Source: Oikopleura dioica (Eukaryota; Animalia; Chordata). From it: a DNA stretch of 64,000 nt. The stretch is taken from assembly GCA_907165135.1 (NCBI GenBank), contig OU015566.1, positions 2,976,001 to 3,040,000 on the forward strand, in the 5' to 3' direction. Shown here one piece after another: positions 28,015-45,934 of the stretch; the first letter of the stretch is position 1, and each line of letters starts with the position of its first letter. Below the pieces are notes generated by a model that had not been told where the DNA came from, ran no database searches, and saw only the letters and a list, made by a program, of their open reading frames with translations. Both the position numbers and the translations under genes were made by a program.

Positions 28015-29251
28015 CTATCGCTGTCTTCGGTTCGCCACCTTGTTTCCAGTCGGTTTTCCCTTTCTCGATTTGCCATCTGCTTTGAAGTTGCGCTTCTGAA
28101 CCTTGCCTCCTGCTTTTCTCTTCTCCAAATTAAGTACTTTATCCGCGGCGGAGTTTTTGTTGAATTTCGGGTTTTTCGCTGACATCAGGTCAAGGATCTG
28201 TTTCTGCTCCGCCTGAAATGAAAATAAGTATCGCTTTATCTGTATTTTTTTATTTTAAAAGGGAGCTATGAGCACTTACCTCGGCGTCCTTGGAAAAGAG
28301 CGCGTTGTACTTCTTCTTTCCTCCAATTTTTTCCTTCTTTTCGCCTTCAACTGCCTTGTCGAAATTGCCCAAACTGGCCGTACTGTACTTTGCCTTCCTA
28401 AACGAGTCCCGGAGCTCGTCCTTGTCTTGCTGCTTTTTCGCGTTGTTCATTCCTCTCTGTCGCGCTAGAATCGAGAATTCAATCGGCATATATCATGAGC
28501 ATTTTTACCGATGTTTTTGAGCCGGGCATGCTCGTTTTTGGCGACTCGTTCTTTCTTTTCCGCCTTTTCTTTTTCCCAAGGATCGACATTTGGGTCCTCG
28601 TGGGGCTTGATTTCTCGGATCCAGTCTTTCGACTCGTCGTTTTTGTTCAATTGCTAGAATTTCAATAAAACATCGAATTGAAAATCAATTTCTTACCGAG
28701 GCTTTTTCAGCTCTCATGTATCCCCATCTCGGTTTCCAGGAGTTTGTGATTTCGCACCAGACCATTCTCGACTTCTTTTTCTTCGGGTTGATTCCTTCAA
28801 AATTGATCATTAGTCCACGACTCTAAAAGACTAAACGCACCTTTCAACGTCGCATAAGCTTCCCACTTCGTCTGAGCGGCCTTCTTCGGCACTGGTTTCT
28901 CACGTGGTTGGATGAACACATCATCGTACTTTTTATCTGGCAGTTCTGTTACGATCGAGTCGTTCACAACTAAAAAATCAGTAAAATCAACGAGGAGAAG
29001 TGGCTATTATACCTTCAGTTTCAAGCCCATCGCCCTTGAAAATCTGGTTGATGAGCAATTGAGCGTTGTCGCGGGCAAGGTCTTTGAGGTACTCGTTGGA
29101 TTTGCCCGTCAACTCGTTTGTATCGAAAATAAGCAGGTCTTTCAGATCAAACTGCGGCTCTAGAAATGTGTAAAAAAGGGAGGGGGAGTTCATTCTCACC
29201 AAGGACTTTTTCGACCTCGACTGTGACGGCTCCGACTTTTTCAACTTCCAT
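28015..29251 (-). CDS. RRS1: Ribosome biogenesis regulatory protein
   Basis: QFDLKDLLIFD, LARDNAQLLINQIF, PREKPVPK, TKWEAYATLKG, WKPRWGY, KKERVAKNEHARLKN, STASLGNF. Confidence 0.93.
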
Positions 29252-29327
29252 TCTTGAGACAAGTAAACGTTAAAAAATCGAAAAAGACGACATTTTTATA
29301 AGGAAAGGGAAAAATACAGAACAGTCA

Positions 29328-30261
29328 TCACTTTTTCTTCTTTTTGCTAACTGGAGATGTTCCCAAGAGCTCATGTCTTTTTGCCTCCGCGGTTTTACTT
29401 AAAAAGGTTTAATTGCTTTCTTCTAGAAAACAACTTTACCTTAGTGTGAACGCAGCTTTATCCACCATCCCTTCAAGTGTCAAAATCACATGAGCCCCCA
29501 AACTCTTCGCTGCCCATTCATCTTCCAAATCCTCCGAATACTGCTCACTTTTTTCTGCTCCTTCCATCGCTTTCAAGTACTGGGAGGATTTGACCTTCAA
29601 CATCTTTTGAGAGAAGGATTGTTCGATGGAGTCGACGTTTTTGACAAGCTTTTTACGCGAAGCAGCTGTTGTTGGGGGAATTTTGATCGTGATAACTTCG
29701 TTTTGAGATGTAGCGATGAGGTTTGCTTTCTGGCATGCTAGAAATTCAGTCAGCTGTTGATTACTGCATTCTTTTACCTTGAGTGATCGGCTGAACAAGC
29801 TCAGGACAGCCAGCAACAGAAGCTTTCACCATGCTCCGACTAACAGCCAAAGTCGCCAAATCTTCCAAGCAAAAAGGTCGCCATCGTAAAGCACATTCAG
29901 CTGTCCAACGGTCTCTGCCTCTAAAACGCTCTTTCTCCACTCCTATCAACTTCAAAATCACCTCAAAGCCGGGCTTGATCGCGTTCAAATGGCCCAGCGA
30001 ATCGTCAAGAAGCGTTTCGACGATTTCCTCAACGGCGAAAAAGTCGATGAAATCAACATCATCAAAGTCAGATTCTTGAAAAGCGGAAACGACGAATTTC
30101 TGAGCAGAGCTACGTCCTCGTTCTTTGGGCCCTTCGAGGAAGCGTTGGTTCTTGTTTTTCTTGATATCGATGTTTTCAAGCTTCAAGTAATCAGGAAGAG
30201 CAAGAGCGGCGCTAGAATTGACAAAGGCTCTTTTGATGCCTGATATCGACGTCCGTAACAT
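29328..30261 (-). CDS. MRRF: Mitochondrial ribosome recycling factor (divergent)
   Basis: Transit-peptide-like MLRTSISGIKRAF; ITIKIPPTTAASRKKLVK; C-terminal RHELLG, similar to the RRF KELLG end. Confidence 0.65.
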
Positions 30262-30408: not shown

Positions 30409-33400
30409 TCAAAATCGCCCGTGATTGTCTTCCAGCAGTCCTTTTTCGATGATGCCAAGATCTTCGAATGCTACCTTCATCTTGTCCACCATATGCTGGA
30501 TTCCCTTCTGCTGGTCCTAAAGAAAAATAGATAGAGGGCCGGGGAAGAGAAACTTACCCCAAGATGTTTTTGAATAGCCTTCATAGTTCCTTCATCAAAG
30601 TTGGCGTTGACATTTTCAAAGTGGGGCCGATGATCACCTTCGTACTGCATCCGGATCGAAGACAGAAGCTCATTCAGTCGTCCTAAAAGGAGGGATGAGA
30701 TCAAGGAGGAAGCATTTTTTAACAAATAATGAATAGATATTGAGTTTAGACCGGAAGTAGAGGTGAAAAATGACAATAAATACTTGCTCCGAGCATAGTA
30801 TATTGTCAGAATAAAAATGCCTGAATTAGATTTTGGAAAAATCGTCGACGAGTTTGTCGAGCACACCAAGAAAGTAGGAAAAAAGGACTGGGAACAGCTC
30901 TTTGCGCTTTTCGAACGAGGTTTGATAAGAGAGAATTTCATACATTTGTTATTATATATTTTGAAGAGGCTGAAGAGAAAAAATATCCTCTCGATACAAG
31001 AAAACGTGACTTGTTTGAATTCATGGACTATCTAATGACTACTGGACTCGAGAAAATGGCTGCCATTGTGGATGTTGCCGATATGCATGTTTTCAAGCAA
31101 GAGAACGGGGAGCTGTCCGAAGCTTTCAAATCACTGTATCGGGAATATGAAAATGTTTAAAGCCTTTCATCTCTCACCATTGACAAAATAAATCAATAAA
31201 GAGCCAAGATGTTACCTCTGAATTGCTGCGGAGCGCGAATTTGATTGTTGAGCGCTTCCAGCTGGGCTCTCAGCTGCTCTTCTTCTGTTTGAATCGCCAT
31301 ACCCGACTTTCGTTGCACTTCTTGAGCGATGATCACTTCGAGGATCTTGTGGGAGAGCTCGAGGAGTTTCCGTTTGCGTTCTTGAATCTTTGACTTTGTA
31401 TTTGCCTGCCGCTCCTTTGAAGAAAGATAAGACGATGTTAAACAAGGGAAATAGTACCTGGGCTTCACGAATTTCCTTCTTGAGCATGTCGCATCGATTT
31501 TCATGCGCTTGAGTCATTTCTTCCTGCAGTTTTAGCCGTCCATTCAGCGCTTGAAACCCTAGGGAAGCCCTTTCATCACTTGAAAACGAGGCTTAAATTA
31601 CCGAGAATAGGAACAGGAATCATTTTCTTCGGGTCGGGATTGTTCGCCACTGCTTGCTTCCAAATCACTGGGTCAATACAGGCAGGAGGTTTGTCGCAAA
31701 TCTGCTTGATAGTCTCTTCTGATAATGTCGTTCTTACTGTAATTTCTTCCAGCGCAAGTGCGGTTGTCAATTGCGATTTGATATTCTAGGGGATTTTTAA
31801 CGATAGTTTTTGGGTAAAAATACCTGTTGATTGAGCCCATTTGACAATTCCGAAGCGCCAAGCACTCGTGATGTTCCATCGTTGTTCTGCACCTTGACAA
31901 ATACAGTAGCTTCTGTTTTTTCGCTCTCGATTGCGCGCAAGCCTTCGACTTGTACTGAAATCGCTGGATTCTTTCCCATCGCGTTGTGGATTGCATCAGA
32001 TACAGTCGACTTTTCGACGCCCCCAGGACCGAGTTTTTTCTTCAGCGTCAGAATCACAAGACCGTCTATGGAAATAACTGAATCATTGCATCAAAAAATC
32101 ACTGTACCGGAATCTTTCGCAGTCGGTAGGGAAGCATATCCAACATTTTTAAAGCAGCAGAAGTGATTGTTTGGCTTGAGTTCGACCGCTTCTCCACTCT
32201 TTGAATAGAAAGCTTTTCCAGCGCCCCAATTTGCCTGGACCGTGTTGAATTTACCGATGATTTGGTCTCGCTCGTCGCCGAAAAGTTGAGGCTGGGACAA
32301 GGCTTTGGCAGTGAGGAGGAGCTGGTTGGATGGCTGGCCTTGTTGGTTCTGATTCTGGTTGTTCTAAAATAGCACTTGGTGAACTCGTGATACTCTCTTT
32401 CTATCTGGTATCCGATAGCCAGCAGGAAAAGGAGACATGTGTAAATGAACAAATGTCAAAAAAGCCCCGCTCAGAATCATTTCTTATCGATCAGAAAAGC
32501 TCGACAAATATCCCTGCAACTGCGCAATCAACAAATAATCTACCCTTATAAACAACAAATCAGAATGTCAATGAAAAAAGAATCCAAGATGCCCGAGGAA
32601 AATGAACCCGGTGAAGATATAACGATAGTCGTCAACGAAAAGCCAGAAGAGGGAAAGAACGAGAAAAATGACCTAGAGCTTTCGCATTCCGATGACTCCA
32701 TCAATAAAGATACCTATGAGCCGGAAATTGTGGAAAACTATCAAGAAGTGAAAGATTTAAACGGCAGACGCTTGGTAAAACTTCCAATAAAGTCAATTCT
32801 TGAAAAAAATTTTAGTTGAAGATTGGAGCTTTGGTATTTTTGCTCATAAGCATTATAGTAATTTCCGTTACCGTTCCACTTGTCCTTCTTGCCCCGACCA
32901 CAGAACCAATAAGCGAACTAAGTTCAACGACATCATCCCTATTAATTGAAACAACCACAACAGCACAGATAACCAACATAACAACGACAAGCCAGTCAAA
33001 GTCTGAACTCACAACCACAATGACTAACAATGCGGAGAAACAGACCTCAACTAAACCAGTAATTTCAACTTCACGAAACGTCTCCACATCGTCTTCGATA
33101 ACAAACAGTACAGTGATCTCTGCGCCAACATCATCTGCCGCTTCTACTTCAACAACTTGTCCAAAAACTGCGTTGACAACTACTTCAACGACTAATTCAA
33201 CGACTACTTCAACGACTACTTCAACGACTACTTCAACCACTACTCCAACGACTACATCAATATTTACAAAAACGACTACGTCAACAACAACATCAACCAC
33301 AACAATAAGAGTCATTGAAGATGATAAAGAGTGTCTCGGTATTGATGAGCTTTTACAACTAGGTGGTATTTGTCGATTGAACATAGGCTATCCGATTAAG

Positions 33401-35544
33401 CCTTGTAATAAATATGACAAAGGTAGAATATTTCTCAGCCCAAAAAATTAAAAATTAAGGATGTTATCATCTCGACGGAACTTGCGTAAAATCACTCTAT
33501 ATGGACATGAGTTTATGCGCTGAACTGCTAAATTGGGAATTTTGTGAAGAAGAGCAATCAGAAGACCCAGATTATATTTATGAGCTCTGTAACCCACCTG
33601 AAAAATAAACAAAAAAATCTTACTCTTGATAAAATGATCAAGAAGATGCACAAACTTTATCTCTTGAACTCTTTGATAGAAAAGTGCCGCCGAAGAAGTC
33701 ACTTGACAGTACTGTCAAAAATGCTGTCTTCAAACATATCTGTATAAACAGAAAGAACTGTTTTTCGAATACAGTTTTTGCATCTTCAAATCAAATGTCT
33801 GAAGAAAGAAGTAAAACAGGTTTTTTTTAAGTGTGCCCAAAAATGGTGGAGCGTTTTTGAAGGTGTTAGAGTCGAGATATTTCAATTCTCTCTTTTGCAC
33901 CTTGTTGGGGAGGGTCTGTAGTGTGTTAAATAAGCTTTTGGTGATATTTGCACCAGTGGAGGTGGAGTTATGACGTCACAAAGTTGAAGGCCCCCTTTTA
34001 TAATGCATTTTTATGACGTCATAACTCCACCACCAGAATAGATATTGACACCAACTCTATCTCAAATGAGTAAACTAATACCCGGCTACATTCTGCAAGT
34101 TACAGATTGTAATAATATTAACCCAATCAAAAGATACGAAAATTCTCGGGCACACTTAGAAAAAACCTGTTTAACTCCGCATCGAGAGATAGTCTTTATG
34201 ATGAATTTCAAGAAGTAAAAGAGCCAAGAGCTAAACCATGGGTGAGTTAAACTACTGATGAGATTTAACTACATAAGATTTGAGGTTATTTTCCTAAGTG
34301 TTTGTTTTGTTCTTACTTGCCTCATCACCGCTATCACGATTCCAATTACTATCTCTCCAGCTACTAAGCCGGAATCTACATCAGAAACGCCAGTCCATTC
34401 GACCATGACAACGAGCTCAACAGTAAAATCAACGACATCTTCAACAACAACATCGACGACAACTTTCCAAATTTCTTCTCATACGACAAAAACTACAACA
34501 TCCCCCACAATAATTTTTACGACAATACCAACGACAATGGACGCTCCAACTACTCAGTTGACTACAACAAGGCCTTTCTTAACTTCTTTTCAAACAACAA
34601 CAACAAGAGCAGTCGATAACACTGCCGAGTGCGATGATATCAGTCATTTACTTGATCGAGGGATATGTTATTTCGACAAGCATTATCCAGTCAAGCATTG
34701 TGACAAGAACGATTTAGGTAGTAGTTTTTAATCGAGCTATTTTTTTTAAATTAAGGCTGCTATAAAATTGGTGAAAAATGCCTGAAATCATTGTACTTGG
34801 ATTGGACGCTATGCGTTGATTATCTAGGATGGGAGAATTGCGAAAATGATGAAACTGAAGAGCCGGAACTTATTTCTGAGTGCTGTTTGAACCACGACTG
34901 TACTGATAATTGAAAATAAAACGTACTTGATTATTATTTGAAAAAGCAGACGCTCCAAAAGAACTCGTGTTTCCAAAAAGTCCTCCTGTCGTCCCAGTCG
35001 TCGATTTATTACCAAAGAGTCCACCACCGCTACTCGACGTTGTCGTATTTCCAAAAAGACCGCCTCCAGTTGAAGTCGAAGTATTTCCGAACAAACCTCC
35101 TCCAGAAGAAGAGGTAGTCGTGTTTCCAAAGAGACTTCCGCCGGTTGAATTCTTATTGCCAAAAAGACCGCCGCTTGACGACGAGCTTGTAGTTGTGTTG
35201 CCAAATAAGCTGCCTCCAGTTGACGTACCAAAAGTAGAACCGCCTGAAAATTAAAGTTTATTACTCTATTCTCTTTGATTTCGGCCTGCAACCTTCAGGG
35301 TCTTTCTTTCTCTTGATAAGCATTTTTCAAAAGAAGAAGGAAACGATCTGTCTCTCGTAAAAGAATGAGAATCATCTCAAGAGAAATCTAGAAGGCGGAA
35401 TAGATCTAGAGATCGGGTACCTGTAGAAGAAGTGGCTGTGTTTCCAAAGAGACTTCCACCTGTTTTATTATTCGAATTCCCGAAGGTAGATGTCGTCCCA
35501 AATGAGGAGGTGCTATTTGACGTATTTCCGAAGCTAAACGTCAT
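30409..35544 (-). CDS. NUP54: Nucleoporin Nup54
   Basis: N-terminal GGLFG repeats; PQLFGDERDQIIGKFNTVQANWG, PPACIDPVIWKQA..NPDPKKMIPVPILG, QRKSGMAIQTEEEQLR, GRLNELLSSIRMQ. Introns 32364-34926 and ~30684-31213 join in frame. Confidence 0.95.
30817..31160 (+). CDS. Small (~98 aa) uncharacterised gene nested antisense in a NUP54 intron
   Basis: ATG at 30817; a 47-bp GT-AG intron 30920-30966 joins two open frames (…LFER|EAEEKKYPLDTRKRDLFEFMDYL…); TAA at 31158. Confidence 0.6.
32565..33608 (+). CDS. Thr-rich/Cys-domain type II membrane protein (paralogue B), nested in a NUP54 intron
   Basis: 41-bp intron 32775-32815 is in frame; TM IGALVFLLISIIVISVTVPLVLL; ECLGIDELLQLGGICRLNIGYPIKPC|GCYHLDGTCVKSLY..C...CEEEQSEDPDYIYELC. 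Confidence 0.8.
33850..34050. repeat. Fragment of the foldback family seen at 7314-7808
   Basis: Shares GTCGAGATATTT..TCTCTTTTGCA..GTGTGTTAAATAAGCTTTTGGTG; perfect 18-bp inverted repeat GGTGGAGTTATGACGTCA (33961-33978 / 34014-34031). Confidence 0.65.
34066..34913 (+). CDS. Thr-rich/Cys-domain type II membrane protein (paralogue C), nested in a NUP54 intron
   Basis: TM VIFLSVCFVLTCLITAITIP; ECDDISHLLDRGICYFDKHYPVKHC|GCYKIGEKCLKSLY..C...CENDETEEPELISECC. Start uncertain. Confidence 0.75.
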
Positions 35545-35668: not shown

Positions 35669-37230
35669 TTATTCTTGCTTGAGGACACATTCAGACGGAG
35701 TTACAACGATGTCATTCCAGATTGAGATTTGTGAGTCTGAAATATATTCAATTTTTCAACCGAAGTCAAGGAAGACTTTCTTGCCTAAATTGGAAGTATT
35801 TTCTAGGCCAAGAACAGCCCTGTGGCCGCCATTGCACCAGACTCGGAGGAGCGTTTGAGCCGTCGTGCAGACCATGTCCATGTCGTTTGGCGACCAGTCC
35901 TGGTGGACGCGGTATCCGGCCTCAGTAGGATCAGTTAGACCGACAGAGTGCGGTAGGAAGATTCCAGAAGCGAGAAGTTGTAGAAGTCGACGCATGACCT
36001 GAAATATTGTCAATTTGTTATGACCAATTTTTTTCACCTTTTGAGGCGATAAGCGGCCAGTTTCCTCTTGCTTCGGGTTGTTCATTATACAGTGCGCGAC
36101 GAGCAGATCGGCGACCCAGACATTCAGTGAGCTAAAAGAAGATATTCGTTTGATCGGATAATTTTCATTCAAACCTGAAGCCAGGGAATCGTTGACGCAA
36201 GTCGCGGAAAATACGAGTCAAAAGAGGAGCCTGAGACTCGTTAGGAGGAACGACTTGGATGGTGGAGGAGTACCATTGAGTGTGCTTGATGGCTCTTTGA
36301 GCGAGCTGACAGAATTCAGGGGAGATGTGAGTTCCTGAATATTGAATTGAAGAAAAGCTCAAGGAAGATAACTTTTAACAGCTATTTAATGAAAAGAATT
36401 CAGACCTGGACATAGCTCTGGAAGCCTTTCAAACGGAATCGTCAGCCAAACTGCGACAGTAGTCGTTTCCTTCTTCGTAATATCGAATCCGTAATCAGTA
36501 CTGTTCAATAAATACTCGCTGCAACTCGGGTCTGTTTCCTTCATCTTATTCATCACTTTACGACTCACTTGTCCGATTGTTTCGTGTGTTGGTAGGGTGG
36601 AAATGATCATGGCAAGGTCAACCCTTTTGTTGTTTTTGAGAAGACAGTTACGCGTGTAAGAACCGATTGTGTGGAATTCCAGGATTTGAAAGTTCTCTGG
36701 CTGGTCCATATCTCCAGTCATGAAGTCACTCGGCGCGTTCGTTTGCTAAACATTATCGTGTCAAGTCTTTTAGACGTTTAGGGCTATCTCAGATAGCCTA
36801 TCTGTAATGATCTACAGACATCCAGGGACTAGAAATCTACCTAGAAATGTACCTGAACAGCAGCGATTCCCGCTACAATTTTATCATGAAGCTCTTTCAG
36901 CGCCAGATAGTCATTTTCATCCGGTCGGATCATGTAATCCCGCTCCTCCAGTGCTTTAAAAATATCGTCTTCGTCCAAATCTGGGCGGATTCTGAACTCG
37001 ATTCGTTTCAATTCCCTTTCCCTGCAAACTCACCTTGGGAAAGACTTTTCACAAATGACGAAATCAAACGGTACATGTGGAACAAACTGTTGTGGCATGG
37101 GCGGTCTTGGAGCTCCCATGGGCCCTCTTGGGCCGTGACCTCCTCGCCAGTTTCCTCGCCATTGCCCTCGACCACGGTAGCCTCCCCGACCACGCGGGCG
37201 ATATCCTCCTCGATTCTGATAATACGACAT
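35669..37230 (-). CDS. ILF2: Interleukin enhancer-binding factor 2 (NF45)
   Basis: RGG N-terminus; FVPHVPFDFVICEKSFPR, IGSY, RDLRQRFPGF, LLQLLASGIFLPHSVGLTDP, DMVCTTAQTLLR, SIWNDIVVTPSE. Confidence 0.95.
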
Positions 37231-37872
37231 TCTAGACGCGCTGATTTTAGCTTCCATCGTTACATAATTGGCAGTTTGTTACAGAAAAATCAAACAGAAA
37301 CGCATAAATCAGCTACCAGTCGTAGTCAAGCAGCGTTCCGCGTTTCTTCTTCGAGTTTTCAAATTGTTCGTTTGGTTTGCCGCGTTTGAGGGATGAATAT
37401 CCTGAAGAACGATCATTCTAGCGCCCGAGTGAGGATATCGTTACCTTTTCTTGCAAGTTGTTTGGCGATAACGATAGCATTCGCTGTGTAAGAATCAGCA
37501 ATTTCCTTCGCTTCCATTTCATCCTCGTCTTCGTCGATTGTCGAGATCGTGACGGTTCCGAATTTTCCAAGATCTAGCATAGTTCATGAGTTTTTGAAAG
37601 GAAAATGAGAAGGGATCACCTTTGATTTCTCGTTTCAACTTCGTTTCGACCTTTTCTCCAGCGACATTCACGTGCTTCTCGCTGCTTTCTAGCGAGTCCG
37701 GGTAGAGAAACATAGGACCACCTGAATGAAACTATAATTTTTACACCTTCAGAGAGGTTGTTTTTACCTTCCGTATGAGCATAAAGTATAGGCAGCTCAC
37801 ACCGTTTACAAAGATGTCTCGTTCTCTCTTCGTATCCATCTTTCCACTTGATATAAATTGATTTATTCTGAG

Positions 37873-38128
37873 TATTGGGATCTTAGATTCGTTAGACTCC
37901 CTCGTCCCCTAAGGTCACTTGCTTATCTAGATCGAGCTTTGCTCGGTCGCCGCCGTGTATTTCTCTTCATTCGGTAATTCACGCAGTTCGTGAATTAACC
38001 TCTATTTTACTCCAGCTCGAAATACAGACGTCAAAGATACTTTACTCGTTTTCTTCACTCGTCCAGATATAGAGAGCAGGCAAACTACGCTAGAAGTGGG
38101 AGATTCAGCAGAAGCTAGGATCCCTTCA
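37873..38128 (+). repeat. 5' LTR
   Basis: TATTGGGATC...GATCCCTTCA; I found no difference from 44099-44354 by eye. Confidence 0.97.
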
Positions 38129-38639
38129 GTGGTATCAGAGTAGTCCCGTTGGAGAAAAGATAAATTTTTCCGCCATCGACAACCGAAGTTTCGCAACTTG
38201 GACGCTGATTGGCCGTCAGCGGAGTCGAGGGGAACCGAATCACCAACCGCCACCGCGCCGCCGGAGAAACTCCACTCAGAGAATTTTCCGCACCACACCA
38301 ACACCACCCCGAGCGAGCGCCACCGCACGAGCGCCACCACGACCCACGCGCCGAAAGTCGCGCCCACGCAACCACGCACGCACGCCGGGGAAAACCTAAA
38401 ATACTGAGAAAAACATAATTCTTTCGCCACTTTTCACCAAAAATCGAGAGAAGTTTACGAAGAATCGACCCTTGGACCAGACCTTGAAATTTCGACAATC
38501 GCTGGACAGAGAAATCGTCGGGCGTTTGCGCAAAAGGCACCTCAGCTCATCATATTGCGACTTTTAGTCGCAGTATTTTCTGAGGGCCTGAAAGGTAATC
38601 CAAGGCCCATAAACCCTTACTGCCGATATATTTCGAGCT

Positions 38640-39572
38640 ATGGCGGCGAACAAATCACTGCTAGAAACCGTCACCGAAATAAGAAGCATAAACGATCGAG
38701 TAAACTACCTCGAAGAACAAGTGCGAAATGACGAATCACTAAAGCCAAGCCTAGAGCCCTTGATCACAGAAAGCAGAGTAAAATTAGAACAGCTCAGTAC
38801 AACGCTTCTTACCTGCGAGCTCGATCAAGGAAAAGACTCTACGAATGCGACAATGAGAGAAGAAGCATGGGTGGCCACTACCTGGTCTCGTCACGTCCAA
38901 GACTTGCCGAAGCTGGACGCCGCATGCAACACATCTTTCAACACCTTCTTGGGCAGAGCCGACATTTATCACCGCGCCTACGTCCGCGACAGACCTTCAC
39001 GTGAACAGCCTTTCATCGCAGCAGTGTACAGCCACTTCGACTTGAACATCGAACGCTCACTTGGAACCGAATTTCTGAATTGTCAAGACTGGAAATCGGC
39101 CAAGGCGCTGCTAGAGAAATCATTCGCCGCGAAGAGTCACTACTTACTGAAGCTAAGCGAAGTTTTCGACGTCGAATACGACCATTCGAAGCCGTTTGCA
39201 CACTACACCGCCAACGTCTTGCAAAAGATGAACGAGGCGAAGCAAGCGACTTTGAACTCTTACCGACAAGAGAAGTCAGCCGACGCCGGGGTCGATGAAA
39301 TATTTGACATATTCTCGACGATGATGCTGTACTTGAATCTTAGGAAAGAAGAACCAGACGTTTTCAACGCAATCCTTCCAAGCCTATCAAAAGTTTACGA
39401 TATCAACGAACTCTGCCGTCTCGCCCAATCCACAAGACAGAATCGAGTTGACAGCGCGACCGTCTCCCAGCACTTCAACAGAAATAAGAACAAAAGAAGA
39501 AGAATGCTAAGCGCGCCAGCAACGATTCTAAGGATGGGAAAGACGATAAACAACCAGAATCCAAGAAGATAA
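38640..39572 (+). CDS. gag: Retrotransposon Gag
   Basis: 310-aa ORF after the PBS with an N-terminal coiled coil; no CCHC knuckle seen. Confidence 0.85.
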   Translation: MAANKSLLETVTEIRSINDRVNYLEEQVRNDESLKPSLEPLITESRVKLEQLSTTLLTCELDQGKDSTNATMREEAWVATTWSRHVQDLPKLDAACNTSFNTFLGRADIYHRAYVRDRPSREQPFIAAVYSHFDLNIERSLGTEFLNCQDWKSAKALLEKSFAAKSHYLLKLSEVFDVEYDHSKPFAHYTANVLQKMNEAKQATLNSYRQEKSADAGVDEIFDIFSTMMLYLNLRKEEPDVFNAILPSLSKVYDINELCRLAQSTRQNRVDSATVSQHFNRNKNKRRRMLSAPATILRMGKTINNQNPRR

Positions 39573-42500
39573 ATACGACTAAGAACGTTGAAGATTTCCA
39601 ACCATTCGACGTTCACTTTTACACAGTGAAGAAGAAGCGACCAGGAAAGGCTTATTTCGCTTCGGCTACCATCATTACGGGCTCTAAAAGTTTTGACGTA
39701 TCGATGGAAGTCGACAGCGGAGCCGAGTCCTCCTGTCTGTCCGCTGCTTACGTTCCCGACGAATTTCTCCAGATGCTGAAGCCCTGTCCCTTCAAGGTCA
39801 CCGGTTTCAGCCCAAATATTCCCGCCGAGCAGCCGATGGGTATCCTTCCCTGCCGCTTATCATTCAATGGTGGCCCTGCATTCTCCCTGAATCTCACCAT
39901 TATGCCAGGCAGTAAATACCCAAGTCTACTGGGCCGCGATATACTAGAGAATGCGATGACGGACAGCTTCACAGTCGACAATAAGAATCGTACTCTCTCA
40001 TTTTGCTACAACGAAGCCTTCACACAAACTGAGACTCAAGTGGTGAAGCTGGACGGAGTGAAGCGGACCAAAATCAAGAAATACTTGACTACTAGATCAG
40101 CGGTCAAGGATAGCGATCGATCCCGCACTCAACCGCCACCAAAAGTCCCAAAGCTGGACGCACCTAACAAGAACGCAGCCAGGTGCCCCATTCAGCTAGC
40201 GAAGCAAAAACTCGGAATTACCCTACCAGCAAACGCCGACCCGGGGCAAAAGAAGGTGGTCGCCGAGCTGTGTTTGGATTTCGACGACAGATTCGGCTGC
40301 GACGGTCAAAAATGGGTGAATTCCCATTCGAGATCGAAATCCCGACTGATGGTACGAGTCGAAACATCAGTCAACACCCTATTCCGCAAGCTTTTCATGG
40401 CCAGGTCACTGATCACATCTCCGAACTGCTCGATACGAAAATAATAGAAGAGATCAAGGACCAGAAAGGGTTTAATAGCCCCGTTCTGCCAATCCCTAAG
40501 AAATCTGGGGAAATGCGCTTCTGCATCAACTACAAGAACAGCTTGAACAAATGCCTCTCCGACAAATCCGACCCATATCATCTTCCGAGCATGGAGGATA
40601 CGATCGCGAACATTGGACCGGGCAACAAGTATTTCGCCACAGTTGATTTGCGGAGCGGATATTGGCAGTGCCCTATTAAGAAAAGCGATAGGTATAAGAC
40701 TTCCTTCCAGTGGGGTGGGAAATCTTACGCCTTCTGCAGATTACCTTTCGGTTATCGATGCTCGGGGAATATATTCTCGCGCGTCGTAAACACGATTCTC
40801 GACTCAAGCCCCACCAGGAAGAAGATGCTTTCTTATATCGATGACATAGTATGTTTTGGGAAGTCTTTCAGCTGCTATTACAACACTCTCCGAAACCTAT
40901 TCATCGCGCTCCGCAAGTTTAACGCTAAACTCAAGGGCGAAAAGTGCTCTTTCCTACAATCAGAAGCTCACTTTTGGGCCGAATCATCAACGAAGAAGGA
41001 ATCAAACCGGACCCTGCGCAAGTCTCCGCCCTTCGTCAGATGAAACCCCCACGCTCCCAAAAGGAGTTAGCTTCATTAATCGGGTCATTGAATTGGATCC
41101 GAGGTTTTCTAGAAACAAAAATGGGCGAAGCTATTTCATCCGGTTGCTTCTCGAGCAGAATGAAACCCATAAACGATGTTCGAAATTCGGCGAACGAAAC
41201 AAATTGTTTCAAGTGGACCAAAGAAGCGGATTTGGCGCTCAAGGAAATTCAACGACGACTCTCCGAGACTCCTGTCATAAGCTTTCCTAACTTTGACGAG
41301 TCTTTTCACCTCTACACAGACGCGAGCCTGTACGCAGCGGGTGGTGTTCTGCTACAAGAGTATGGCGGGAGAGTGCACCTAGTAAGCGCGATTTCCCACA
41401 CCTTCAACAAAGCTGAAAGAAAATGGAACACTTCAGAAAAGGAAATGTTTAGCATTGTCTGGTGCTGCGAGCGACTGGAAAAGCTCCTGAAAGGTAGATT
41501 CTTTCAGATTCACACAGACCACAGATCTTTGATCTTCCTACACAAAAAGAAGTTCAAGAATTCTAAAATAAGCCGATGGCAAAGCCGATTGGAAGAATTC
41601 GATTTTCACATTGTCTACATCAAGGGATCAGAAAATCAATTCGCCGATTTTATGAGCCGCAGACCTGGCGAGGACGACAAATCACTTGGATACGACTCTG
41701 AGTTTCCCGTTGGTCGCGAGTACGAAATCGACAAGAATTCACCAGTACGTGTCTTCGTCCCTTTCTGGAACGAAAATCAGTTTCCGGAGAAAATCACTTT
41801 ATCAGAGGTGAAGATACATAAGGTAAACGTCAAGGCTATCGCGGCGCCAATGGAGATTCCGTTGGTGTCAGCGAATTATAATAACATTCTGGACTATCAA
41901 AGGGAGGACTCTGCTCTGAGTGCAATCATCACTTTTCTGGAATCTGGTAAGGAGCCACTGGACATAAAATCGCTGGTGAAGGACTCCGACCACCGACAAT
42001 CGTCTCTACTCAAGATGGAAAAAGCTCTGTTCCTGGATAACACTACCGGGTGCTTGATGTGTCAATTCAAATCTGGCGCGCGGGCGGTGGTACCGGAAGC
42101 GGTAAAAGTCACTTTCTCTTTCTAGCTCACGACTTGTCCGGTCATCTGGGCGAGCCGCGGACTTTAGAGCGATTAGAGGACGTTTGGTGGCCTTCATTTC
42201 AAGACGATGTTTCTAACTACGTCCACAGCTGCGTCCCTTGCCTACGCAGAAAAGGATCTGCTGGAACTCGTACCAAACCGCCACTTGGAACCCTTCGTCG
42301 TGGAAAAACAGCTGGCGAATCGATTCAGATCGATTTCGCTTGTATGCCTCCCGCTGGCGGATTCAAGTATTATTTGGTGGTGGCGGACACTTTCTCTCGC
42401 TACACTTGGTGCATTCCGACGCGGTCCGACACTGCTATCCGCGCTGCAAAAGCGCTCATCTACAAGGTCTTCCTTCCCATGGATTTCTTGCCGAAACATC

Positions 42501-43789
42501 TACACAGTGACAGAGGTACCCACTTCTGCGCAAGCGTGATTGACGAAATGTGTAAGCTTAACCAGATAAAACATACAATAAGTACCGCATTTCACCCTCA
42601 ATCAAACGCTTTCGCAGAAAGAGCGAATCGGACTATCAAAAACAGTCTATTCTGCATGGTCAACTCATCTTCCGGTCGAAAAACTTGGGCCGACTGCGTT
42701 CCCCACGTGATGCGCGCGCTCAATAGTGTGAAAAACAAAAGCACGAAAATTTCACCGCGAGAAGTTTGGTTTGGCCGAAAAAGTACTTTCACCCACTCTA
42801 CTGGCGCAGAAATGACAGCGGAAACACCTCAGGTGTTTGGTCTCAATGTTGGAGCTTTAGCGAAATCGGCGGAAGCCATTGTGAAAACTGCGATGGAAGC
42901 TGCTGACCGAGCCATGGAGCACAGGCTGAAAAACGAGCCTAAGCCGAGACCAATCCCCGCTGGCGCTGTCGTGTACATTAAGCGAGAAAACCTGACCGAC
43001 GCTAAAAGCAAGAAGGAACGCTGGGTAGGTCCCCTGAAAGCCGTTTCGAGCAACGACTGGGTCGTCATGGTCGAAGATAAAAAAGGACAACGTGATTTCA
43101 TCCATCGAGAACACGTGGTTCACGCCGCAGAACGAAATCACGACTTACGCTGGATTGATTACTACGAGGCCGAGTACGTATTCCCACATTTAACCGAAAT
43201 CGTTAAGTCGAAAGTCCCACAAAAATCGCCTGTTCCTACTTCCAAACCGATGGAAAAGTCCGGGTCGAAGTCGCATGGGGGGAGGAAATCTTCTCAGGTC
43301 GCGTCGACTCCGATGGTTGCTATGGAAAAACCGCCAAGATCATCTCTATCACCTATTTTGGAAAGTAGACGCCGATTGGACATGGAAAATCTGGGAGATA
43401 CAACCGCTACATCTATTTTGGACTCGTCGGTAGCTCCAGCCGAGCCGTCAGATCGCTGGTACTCTGGTGGTACTCTTTATGAAACTGCCGAGGACATGTC
43501 AGCTGATGCTACAGTGATTTCGGAGGTTGCTGCGCCCGACAATAGCCATATGTCAGTCGATAAACATAATTCAACAGTAGTTGAGGGCTCAGCAACTGAA
43601 AACAGCAAGAAAAGAACCCGTCCAAAGTCTTCACCAGATCGTCAATACTCAGCCGGCGCCGATCCGAATGCGACTTTAACCGAAGTTGGAGCAGCTCATC
43701 TCCCGAAACATACAAAACGAGCACACCGTGAAACGAGGCCCGTCGAACCTCTAAACATCGGCACAAACTCGGGTCAGTCATACGACTAA
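39490..43789 (+). CDS. pol: Retrotransposon Pol (protease, RT, RNase H, integrase), broken by -1 frameshifts as assembled
   Basis: VDSGA; VDLRSGYWQ, LPFG, YIDD; YTDAS, TDHRSL, ADFMSR; HDLSGH..CVPC, IDF, SDRGTHF, AERANRTIK, WVGPLKAV. Confidence 0.97.
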
Positions 43790-44098
43790 GCGCAAGTACT
43801 GCCCCACTCAGGTCCCCTATTCATCGACCGGGGCCTGAAAAGGTACGGAAATTATCACAGTTTACCGTCGCCGACGTATTTTGAGTTCTTCTACATGTGC
43901 AGCTACTCCTTCATGTCATCACCGCTCGGACATCACGAAAACTTCGCATCTGATTCAAGCTTTTTCCCAAAAAAGGGTTTTTTAACGCGAATCAGACTGC
44001 CTCGACGTTTCGAACCTGCCATGTTACTCATCTTACGCTTATACTCCTGCAAAAATCACACACTTTGGCCTTAGAGGACGTTTCAGTCTCATGGGGGG

Positions 44099-44354
44099 TA
44101 TTGGGATCTTAGATTCGTTAGACTCCCTCGTCCCCTAAGGTCACTTGCTTATCTAGATCGAGCTTTGCTCGGTCGCCGCCGTGTATTTCTCTTCATTCGG
44201 TAATTCACGCAGTTCGTGAATTAACCTCTATTTTACTCCAGCTCGAAATACAGACGTCAAAGATACTTTACTCGTTTTCTTCACTCGTCCAGATATAGAG
44301 AGCAGGCAAACTACGCTAGAAGTGGGAGATTCAGCAGAAGCTAGGATCCCTTCA
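44099..44354 (+). repeat. 3' LTR
   Basis: Direct copy of 37873-38128 at offset 6226. Confidence 0.97.
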
Positions 44355-44711
44355 TGAGCGACGATTCCTGGAGTTCGAAAGACGGTGAATTTCGGGTCGA
44401 GAACTCGGGCCTTGTCTTTCGATCGCATCGGCAGCATGTCCAGTTCTTTATCAACGACTGAGAGCATGATATTCAGGTCGATTTTGACGAGACTTACTGA
44501 GACAAAGTTGACCACAAAGACAGTGATACGTTTTCAGCGACCCTTCAGTATCATATTTGACAGGCGCAAACTTCTGTACTGCAAAGATCTTGGCATCTTG
44601 AGTGTATTCTTCTCGAGCACCGCGCTCCTGGTGCATTGCCAGGCCTCCAATACTTCCCGTCGCCATTTTTGATCAGCTGAAAGTTATGAAGTGAAATAGG
44701 GGTTAAGATAC

Positions 44712-44822
44712 GGCTTCGTAACCTGTGTATAAAAGCGGCTTTGACAGACAAATGATCTTATTGGCTTAAGTGTCTAGCTCGCTCAGAAACCTGAGTCAGG
44801 CCTTCTACACAGGTTGACTAGC
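44712..44822. repeat. CCTGASTCAGG-family palindromic repeat upstream of STEEP1
   Basis: AACCTGTGTA...CCTGAGTCAGG (44790-44800)...TACACAGGTT. Confidence 0.6.
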
Positions 44823-45217
44823 GAAAGATTGAGAGGCAAAAGCAGAAAACATGCGTTTTGAAAATTATAGTACGTTGGTTCATCAAAAATTGAAGAAGAA
44901 TAAAACAAAAGTAGATAAAGAAGGTCAGTAGAAACAAATGATAAAGAAAGGTAAGGAAAGTGCGTTTTTAAATCAAAAAGTTGGTACAAAATCAAACTTT
45001 TTCGGTGTTCTTTTAGCATTATTTTTGTTGGCGTAGAAGAAGGCAATCTGGTTAATAGAGATTATTCTAGATAACTGTCCGAATAATGGAATTCTTTTGA
45101 GGAATGCTGTTTTTAGAGTCGGTTAGTACAGAGAGAGAAAACATGAAGCAAAATTTCATTGAAACGAAATATACAGGCTTTGGAAATCAATTTGCTTCGA
45201 CGAAAAAATGACGACGA

Positions 45218-45934
45218 TCACATGATTTGACAGCCCTTTTTCTTTTTGTTCTTCTTTGGCTGCGGTGGCGGGTTTTTCAGCCTGTATTGGACCACTTCTC
45301 GGACGATCTTGAAACAAATGAGAGTTTGCTCAAGAGTAAGAGCGTACCTCAGTGAACAAATTCTCAACATTGAGGTTTGTTTTGGCAGAAGTAACGATGT
45401 AGCGCAAGTTTAGCTGGTTGCACATACTTCTGACGGCGTCTTCTTGGAATTGACGGTCTTCTTTGTCCGCTTTGTTGACCGCTATGATGATCGGTCCGTG
45501 CTTTCCTGAAAGAAAAATGAGATCTGACATTAATACTTTTTTCTTACTCTCTGAGGTTCGCTGAATTTCGTCAAAGAACTTCCTCACTTCGTCAAGAGAA
45601 GCTCTGCTGTCGAAGGAGCAGACAATGATGAATCCTTGGCCGCTTTTGTAATAGTTCTCGCGGAAGAGAGAGAACTCATCTTGACCAGCCGTGTCCAAGA
45701 TGCTCAGTTTGTATGTTTGACCGTCTACGTCGTGCCGTTTTACGTAGTTGTCCTGAGAAGAATTGAATGAAAAGATTGGTGCTGCCGAGCCCAGTTTCAG
45801 ACTCCTCTTACCTCCAGTGTGGGATCATATTCCTGCACAAAAACTTGTTGGTGAAACTGAACTGTTAGCGCTGATTTACCAACTCCCCCAGATCCGAGCA
45901 CTACTAAGCTCATGTCATTCTGCGGAGACGCCAT
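45218..45934 (-). CDS. Ras/Rap family small GTPase
   Basis: [33 protein letters not shown], polybasic tail KKNKKKKG and CaaX box CQIM. Confidence 0.93.

Follow-up and report, generated by a model that had tools for sequence, protein, structure and literature searches.

Introduction

Polymorphic LTR-retrotransposon knockout alleles include Cer1 in C. elegans plg-1 and gypsy insertions in Drosophila. The closest described elements to the one reported here are the Tor retrotransposons of Oikopleura dioica. Their target duplications comprise 4 or 5 bases, and their insertions were hemizygous and found in <5% of animals, with no homozygous insertion seen; env is missing from a few Tor elements (PMC4402516). 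Conceptually, a further insertion of this kind is nothing new, as rare, young and hemizygous Tor insertions have been published before.

Here, we analyzed a stretch of 64,000 nucleotides (the window) from the Okinawan O. dioica assembly OKI2018_I69. With a probability of roughly 0.85, we consider that an env-less Tor copy recently transposed into exon 2 of the single-copy autosomal gene STEEP1 and produced a loss-of-function allele, likely on one haplotype.

Results and Discussion

The Host Gene and the Insertion Site

The six exon pieces of the host gene (Table 1) tile the 230-aa STEEP1 protein of Bergen O. dioica (CBY08100.1/E4X8K9) with 85–95% identity, and E4X8K9 is named STING ER exit protein in UniProt. 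The exons were searched singly, and the flanks of the insert were joined only to test the frame. Matches to the Pfam family STEEP1 (PF25809) were colinear: exon 1 corresponds to profile positions 2–19, the upstream half of exon 2 (2a) to 21–47 and the downstream half (2b) to 53–84. Exon 2b by itself reached 30.8 bits against the PF25809 cut-off of 27. Besides the insert, the exons contain no defect. A search of the assembly for a second STEEP1 copy, which the sequence-only reading had suggested, returned none; the interrupted locus is the one copy in OKI2018_I69, and the gene is single-copy.

Table 1. Positions in the window of the host gene, the following gene and the inserted element.
Feature	Position	Strand	Remarks
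STEEP1 exon 1	44498–44666	−	ATG at 44666; GTAAGT donor at 44497
STEEP1 exon 2, upstream half (2a)	44355–44457	−	
STEEP1 exon 2, downstream half (2b)	37768–37868	−	
STEEP1 exon 3	37620–37721	−	
STEEP1 exon 4	37445–37573	−	
STEEP1 exon 5	37313–37401	−	stop TAG at 37315–37313
ILF2-like gene	35756–37230	−	DZF_N, DZF_C; ATG at 37230
Target-site duplication, left copy	37869–37872	.	TGAG on +, CTCA on −
Target-site duplication, right copy	44355–44358	.	TGAG
5' LTR	37873–38128	+	256 bp; ends TATTGGGATC...GATCCCTTCA; 256/256 identical to 3' LTR
PBS-like motif	38130–38147	+	TGGTATCAGAG...; TGG-initiated; one base past 5' LTR
gag-like ORF	38640–39572	+	310 aa in window copy, no Pfam family
pol, four frame segments	39626–43789	+	
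Protease	about 39707–39952	+	weak RVP match
RT	40492–40974	+	RVT_1
RNase H	41214–41600	+	RT_RNaseH/RT_RNaseH_2
Integrase zinc and core	42113–42598	+	Integrase_H2C2, rve
G-run polypurine tract	44093–44098	+	adjoins 3' LTR; 5–7 G among copies
3' LTR	44099–44354	+	256 bp

Exon 2 is interrupted at codons 90/91 of 230 by an LTR retrotransposon of 6,482 bp, with the target duplication TGAG on both sides. The insertion is antisense, because the element has its ORFs on the plus strand, opposite to the minus-strand host gene. When 37873–44354 and one TGAG were cut out and the flanks joined by script, the STEEP1 frame was restored; on the minus strand the flanks with a single TGAG read in frame as ...TPGIVAQNKSIYIKWKDGYEERTRHLCKRCELP..., and exon 2 without the insert is 204 nt long, a multiple of three. 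These results bear out the sequence-only reading, which had described a very young LTR retrotransposon, antisense in a STEEP1 coding exon, with two identical LTRs and a restorable frame: the LTRs match at 256 of 256 positions, the TGAG duplication is present, and the PF25809 matches are colinear on both sides.

From exon 2a, the reading frame enters the antisense LTR for 42 codons and ends at a stop at 44230–44228. A truncating STEEP1 allele is supported. In the proposed mechanism, the integrase would have made a 4-bp staggered cut, giving the TGAG duplication in codons 90/91, and translation would yield 90 native residues followed by 42 LTR-encoded residues and the stop. The loss would cover over half of the STEEP1 domain as well as the entire C-terminal half, so that we infer a loss-of-function allele.

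Structure of the Element

By its LTRs, its target duplication and its protease–RT–RNase H–integrase order, the element is judged to be Ty3/gypsy. In the 309 bp from the pol stop to the 3' LTR (43790–44098), no env-like third ORF was found. This does not exclude membership in Tor, because a few Tor elements are also without env (PMC4402516). As a Ty3/gypsy element in O. dioica with a 4-bp duplication and identical LTRs, it is on these features a Tor element; the assignment is to Tor as a whole and not to a place within Tor1–Tor4.

Beyond the integrase, pol continues as a long tail that matches no family. The gag-like ORF has a frame break near 39491, and its last ~27 codons lie outside the frame of the family; pol has further breaks near 40307, 40971 and 42103. 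All four breaks in the window copy fall in homopolymer runs of 5–6 nt, and the run lengths at these places differ among copies without regard to relatedness. The breaks could be genuine, but they are probably Nanopore homopolymer miscalls rather than true damage. At homopolymer runs, this Nanopore assembly does not allow one to judge whether the ORFs of repeat copies are intact.

Two PBS-derived patterns were searched for the primer tRNA; one gave no match and the other a single match that is not tRNA-like. The element's antisense strand contains no AATAAA and one ATTAAA; as base composition predicts roughly one AATAAA (an estimate), these counts are uninformative.

Copies of the Family in the Genome

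In the Okinawan reference assembly, the family numbers at least 32 copies, and this count is a lower bound. Target duplications of 4 bp flank 32/32 copies. Five LTR haplotypes exist, each common to both LTRs of a copy. Judged from the LTRs, the burst of the family is very recent, because the two LTRs are identical in 30 of the 31 copies besides the one in the window. The PBS-like motif is kept in 28 of 32 copies, and the other 4 carry an A>G variant. A single gag-pol ORF of 1,717 aa is open in 10/32 copies, and one fused ORF of this length is the design of the family. An env-less Tor family has thus undergone a very recent burst, to at least 32 copies, in a genome that is usually called nearly transposon-free.

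The copies also bear on whether the interruption was created by the assembly. A repeat-driven misjoin, or a misplaced copy of this 32-copy repeat in an intact STEEP1, might be suspected in a Nanopore-based assembly with merged haplotypes, where homopolymer noise is seen among the copies and a scaffold gap adjoins one of the others. However, both junctions lie in one exon, the 4-bp duplication is exact and the frame is exactly restored, which a misjoin would not yield; the window contains no N, and the matching 4-bp duplication signature is found in all 32 copies. We therefore regard an artefact as extremely improbable.

Two other statistics of the insertion sites were rejected. The location of other copies in coding sequence was approached by the longest stop-free stretch over rebuilt empty sites; the random-position null was equally long (median 102 against 110 codons), and the statistic does not discriminate. 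G enrichment at both ends of the duplication (7/32) was not significant given the marginal frequencies.

Allele State

OKI2018_I69 is a Nanopore-based assembly of a single male with ~3.6% heterozygosity, and its haplotypes were merged with HaploMerger2. The scaffold that bears the window (C4) ends in telomere repeats on either side and is therefore an autosome. No contig with the empty site was kept in this merged-haplotype assembly. The HaploMerger2 paper contains no statement that the longer allele is preferred, and for this reason we claim no bias toward insert-bearing alleles.

Three public ORFs (P0004, P0002 and P0001) cross the insertion site uninterrupted, although they may stem from another population than the Okinawan one. 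At the protein level P0004 equals the window in exons 2a, 2b and 3, and it differs in an intron read-through. From the merged assembly, the literature and the uninterrupted allele, we infer that, most likely, the sequenced male carried the insert on just one haplotype and the allele is rare in the population. Homozygosity via inbreeding is possible, as the animal was from laboratory culture.

More generally, the insertion could be fixed or homozygous: either the Okinawan lineage is losing STEEP1, or the knockout is homozygous in the cultured line. This would agree with the interruption of the sole STEEP1 locus in the assembly and with the cultured origin of the animal. However, the LTRs are identical and the STEEP1 exons otherwise free of defects, a public uninterrupted ORF has the same exon 2–3 protein sequence, STEEP1 is well conserved in comparison with the Bergen lineage, and the published Tor insertions are all hemizygous and rare (PMC4402516). 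Fixation or homozygosity is thus unlikely. Whichever the state of the second haplotype, the Okinawan reference holds a disrupted allele of its sole STEEP1 gene; therefore, annotation, orthology calls and claims of "gene loss" made here would be misled.

The O. dioica lineage is famous for unexplained intron gain, and the insert might be tolerated through its removal from the pre-mRNA. A permissive spliceosome would excise the antisense Tor copy as a GA-AG intron from the LTR edge to the duplicated target or, alternatively, exon 2 would be skipped, its 204 nt being frame-neutral and divisible by three. The sequence does contain a candidate GA donor one base in from the end of the antisense LTR (exon end 44354, GA at 44353–44352) and a candidate CAG acceptor derived from the duplication (AG at 37869–37868). 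Their predicted use would keep the frame with one Gln-to-His change. About 12% of the introns in O. dioica are of the GA-AG type, and this type has a larger share among new introns (PMC4122922). However, according to the same review, introns above 1 kb are only 2.4% of the total in this species (PMC4122922). The acceptor has no pyrimidine tract, and skipping of exon 2 would delete most of the STEEP1 domain. Removal by splicing, including the GA-AG excision, is very unlikely in our view; if true, the excision would be the birth of an intron from a retrotransposon caught in the act.

Neighbouring Genes

The minus-strand genes downstream of STEEP1 are those named previously, namely an ILF2-like gene (DZF_N/DZF_C), Nup54 with FG repeats, an RRF (MRRF-like) gene and RRS1. 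Two mucin-like genes on the plus strand separate the N-terminal FG exons of NUP54 from its remainder. The distance of 82 nt from the STEEP1 stop to the ILF2 start was also reproduced; an alternative in-frame ATG at 37257 would give a gap of 55 nt. About 210 nt separate ILF2 from the start of NUP54, and 552 nt lie between the end of the upstream Ras-like gene and the STEEP1 ATG.

Plessy (2024) used a 500-bp intergenic rule for O. dioica operons (PMC11067885). Under this rule, the STEEP1–ILF2 and ILF2–NUP54 gaps are within the limit and the gap between the Ras-like gene and STEEP1 is beyond it. The sequence-only reading had placed the insertion in mid-operon, but this position was not established; tight spacing is seen only for STEEP1–ILF2. 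With 552 nt between its ATG and the Ras-like gene upstream, STEEP1 resembles the opening gene of a candidate operon more than one in its middle.

It had also been suggested that LTR promoters might rescue ILF2, NUP54, MRRF and RRS1. Judged on orientation alone, this is unlikely, since a sense promoter in the LTR would drive transcription along the plus strand, in the direction leading away from these four genes. An effect on ILF2 and the further genes would require a hypothetical dependence on read-through transcription started at the STEEP1 promoter. The locus offers a natural test of how a 6.5-kb insertion acts on two adjacent genes that lie close together and may be co-transcribed.

Comparison with Known Systems

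The exons of the host gene share the PF25809 domain and full-length colinearity with STEEP1/CXorf56, the STING ER exit protein, and a corresponding role of the larvacean gene is a candidate only. The locus resembles Cer1/plg-1 and the Drosophila gypsy alleles in that a young full-length Ty3/gypsy-type element lies in a gene and loss of function segregates. It differs from them in that the target is a conserved single-copy gene in an operon-bearing genome and in that the allele is known here from its sequence.

With the Tor elements (Volff et al., 2004; Henriet et al., 2015, PMC4402516), the element shares the host species complex, the LTR structure and the PR-RT-RH-IN order. Its family is also like Tor in having near-identical LTRs, many intact ORFs and young polymorphic insertions (PMC4402516). 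However, most of the Tor3/4 elements studied have env and the window element has none, and it differs further by its single fused gag-pol ORF. For the Bergen strain, few copies of each Tor element are described, whereas the Okinawan family numbers at least 32 near-identical ones per haploid assembly.

The Interrupted STEEP1 Gene

The element lies inside exon 2 of a minus-strand host gene with five exons, separated by GT-AG introns of 40–46 nt. When the two flanks were joined with a single copy of TGAG, one open frame was obtained that reads ...TPGIVAQNKSIYIKWKDGYEERTRHLCKRCELP..., exactly as the sequence-only reading had given it. The exons were searched singly against Pfam, and the matches to the STEEP1 domain were colinear: profile positions 2–19 in exon 1, 21–47 in the upstream half of exon 2 (exon 2a), and 53–84 in its downstream half (exon 2b). 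Thus, the insertion point falls between positions 47 and 53 of the 110 profile positions. The target duplication spans the boundary of codons 90 and 91, with two bases in each.

In the interrupted allele, the frame enters the antisense LTR, runs for 42 codons and stops at 44230–44228. The predicted product would keep 90 of the 230 native residues; more than half of the STEEP1 domain would be missing, as would the conserved C-terminal half. Nonsense-mediated decay of the mRNA is plausible, because three exon junctions lie far downstream of the early stop. Skipping of the 204-nt exon 2 would preserve the frame but would remove most of the STEEP1 domain.

Coordinates of the main features in the window
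Feature	Position	Strand	Remark
RRS1	28510-29295	-	downstream
MRRF-like	29439-29825	-	downstream
NUP54, remaining gene	32300-31196	-
Mucin-like membrane protein genes	32816-33451; 34258-34731	+	within NUP54 gap
NUP54, FG-repeat N-terminal exons	35544-34870	-
STEEP1 exon 5	37401-37313	-
STEEP1 exon 4	37573-37445	-
STEEP1 exon 3	37721-37620	-
STEEP1 intron 2	37722-37767	-	46 nt
STEEP1 exon 2	44457-44355, then 37868-37768	-	continues past element and one TGAG copy
STEEP1 exon 1	44666-44498	-
TGAG flanks	37869-37872; 44355-44358		outer end of each LTR
LTRs	37873-38128; 44099-44354		256/256 identical, base-level reading
Element interior	38129-44098
Frame breaks, window copy	near 39491, 40307, 40971, 42103		one-base length difference from most other copies
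Ras-family GTPase gene	45219-45698	-	upstream

Uninterrupted STEEP1 in Public Sequences

A large protein search was run with the minus-strand ORF at 44228–44515, which covers exon 2a and reaches from intron 1 into the LTR. It returned three ORFs with a STEEP1 domain, all of which span the insertion site uninterrupted. P0004, which comes from an ENA contig and clusters with P0002, matches the window exactly across exons 2a, 2b, and 3 and differs only in intron read-through, as would be expected of a second haplotype or a different individual from this lineage. The closest named proteins are from O. dioica. The third cluster contains the annotated Bergen O. dioica proteins CBY08100.1/E4X8K9 (230 aa; UniProt name "STING ER exit protein"), which are tiled end to end by six exon pieces of the window at 85–95% identity. 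Because public ORFs cross the site and the Bergen protein is tiled in this way, the identity of the gene, its model, and the empty-site state are confirmed by sequences from outside the window.

Intron 2 of STEEP1 is also found in the closely related public ORFs and is missing from P0003, a Bergen-type genomic ORF that continues from intron 1 into exons 2 and 3 without a break. Judging from these ORFs, this intron is a presence/absence difference between O. dioica lineages.

Structure of the Element

A repeat finder returned one direct repeat pair in 36500–45500, 100% identical and with a spacing of 6,226 bp, and the LTRs, which had looked identical on first reading, do match at every base. 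A PBS-like motif starting with TGG lies one base 3' of the 5' LTR, and a run of six G directly precedes the 3' LTR. The G+C content of the interior is 0.47–0.50, compared with about 0.42 in the surroundings. On the + strand, the ORFs are arranged in the order gag-like, protease, RVT_1 (E 4e-22), RT_RNaseH (E 8e-30), and Integrase_H2C2 with rve (Pfam). The gag-like ORF matched no Pfam family, and the match to retroviral protease was weak. The order of the pol domains is that of Ty3/gypsy. Because pol ends just 309 bp short of the 3' LTR (43790–44098), the element lacks an env gene.

The Element Family

Both the LTR and the interior have many matches across the genome, and the initial candidate counts (84 LTR matches and 44 interiors) point to a total of about 40 copies. 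We compared the window copy with 31 further copies; one copy of the family is located at C4:2569056-2575538. All 32 show a perfect 4-bp duplication, and no two share an insertion site. The LTR pairs are identical in 30 of the 31 other copies, and the remaining pair differs by one base. Five LTR sequence variants occur among the copies, and both LTRs carry the same variant in every copy except one; therefore, the identity of LTRs within a copy is real and no by-product of polishing. Substitutions relative to the window copy range from 2 to 123 over 6.5 kb, with eleven copies showing 8 or fewer.

Several side features were observed among the copies. A 4.3-kb copy (L030, G000:C2:863328-867615) has internal deletions of 1,580 and 616 nt, but its LTRs are identical and its 4-bp duplication is perfect; either it transposed as a deleted derivative or the deletion came later than integration. 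Several copies (L003, L008, L023, L027, and L032) cluster in a stretch of about 220 kb on the pseudo-autosomal scaffold (G000:C1, 6.06–6.29 Mb), and this region may be rich in repeats and perhaps pericentromeric; L032 is an LTR between inverted LTR fragments, and L008 carries a 27-nt insertion where the LTR meets the PBS. The PBS-like motif shows an A-to-G change in at least three copies (L008, L011, and L023; TGGTGTCAGAG versus TGGTATCAGAG). The insertion sites of the 32 copies share a weak palindromic pattern: A or T is found three bases before the duplication in 28/31 and three bases after it in 32/32, and G is the last duplicated base at 16/32 sites. For the window copy, the flanks compared were 37861–37872 and 44359–44366.

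The coding region of the window copy is divided into five frame segments. All four frame breaks are in homopolymer runs of 5–6 bases. Of the 20 sites at which length varies among the 32 copies, 15 fall in runs of at least 4, and the length states are scattered among copies regardless of their relatedness by substitutions. For these reasons, the breaks are probably Nanopore errors in run length that polishing with short reads was unable to correct in a multi-copy repeat. An uninterrupted gag-pol ORF of 1,717 aa is present in 10/32 copies, and we take it as the design of the family. The intactness of repeat ORFs in the OKI2018_I69 Nanopore assembly is untrustworthy at homopolymer runs.

Copy Number of the Locus

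OKI2018_I69 was assembled from one male with Nanopore reads and Illumina polishing; its heterozygosity was estimated at about 3.6%, and HaploMerger2 merged the haplotypes into "reference" and "allelic" sub-assemblies (PMC8008620). Scaffold C4 (14.53 Mb), which carries the window, has telomere repeats at both ends, as stated for the two autosomes of this assembly (PMC8008620). Thus, the sequenced male carries two copies of the STEEP1 locus, and the insertion may be heterozygous. Within the assembly, the STEEP1 domain is found at this locus only. Because each flank occurs once, the assembly contains neither a second STEEP1 copy nor a retained empty-site contig.

Neighboring Genes and the Candidate Operon

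The gene had been placed in mid-operon. On its downstream side, 82 nt separate the STEEP1 stop from the start of the ILF2-like gene, and about 210 nt separate the stop of the latter from the start of NUP54; the MRRF-like gene and RRS1 come next, and all four share the strand of STEEP1. On its upstream side, the nearest gene encodes a Ras-family GTPase; the last exon of that gene ends with polybasic sequence and the CAAX box CQIM, and its TGA (at about 45219) is separated from the STEEP1 ATG by an AT-rich, ORF-free gap of 552 nt. In the operon annotation of this genome by Plessy et al., co-oriented genes are grouped when no more than 500 bp separate them (PMC11067885). Because the upstream gap exceeds this distance, STEEP1 is more likely the first than a middle gene of a candidate operon. 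According to the same study, genes within operons show no strong correlation in expression.

The FG-repeat N-terminal exons of NUP54 lie about 2.6 kb from the remaining gene, and the two mucin-like genes between them look like genes nested in an intron unusually large for O. dioica.

It had also been suggested that LTR promoters could rescue the downstream genes. In Tor elements with mapped start sites, transcription starts in the 5' LTR. If the LTR promoters here are alike, they would fire on the + strand, away from ILF2 and the genes beyond it, and the 3' LTR would send antisense RNA over STEEP1 exon 1. Rescue from an LTR is thus unlikely, as it would need antisense promoter activity.

Comparison with Known Tor Insertions

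The density of genes in O. dioica is about one per 3.9 kb (PMC4122922). It follows that a considerable fraction of new insertions, if they land at random, should strike exons before selection purges them. An exon insertion is exactly what is expected of an identical-LTR copy from a family in full burst. Tor elements, the Ty3/gypsy elements of Oikopleura, carry intact ORFs between near-identical LTRs and duplicate 4 or 5 bases of the target site; insertions of these elements are described as hemizygous, occur in <5% of animals, and were never observed homozygous (PMC4402516). They total 2.97 Mbp in OKI2018_I69 (PMC8008620). Our finding is correct and clean, and is a fresh example of this published phenomenon. 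It goes slightly beyond the examined literature in the burst size of one env-less family and in a reference sequence whose allele of a conserved, single-copy gene is the disrupted one.
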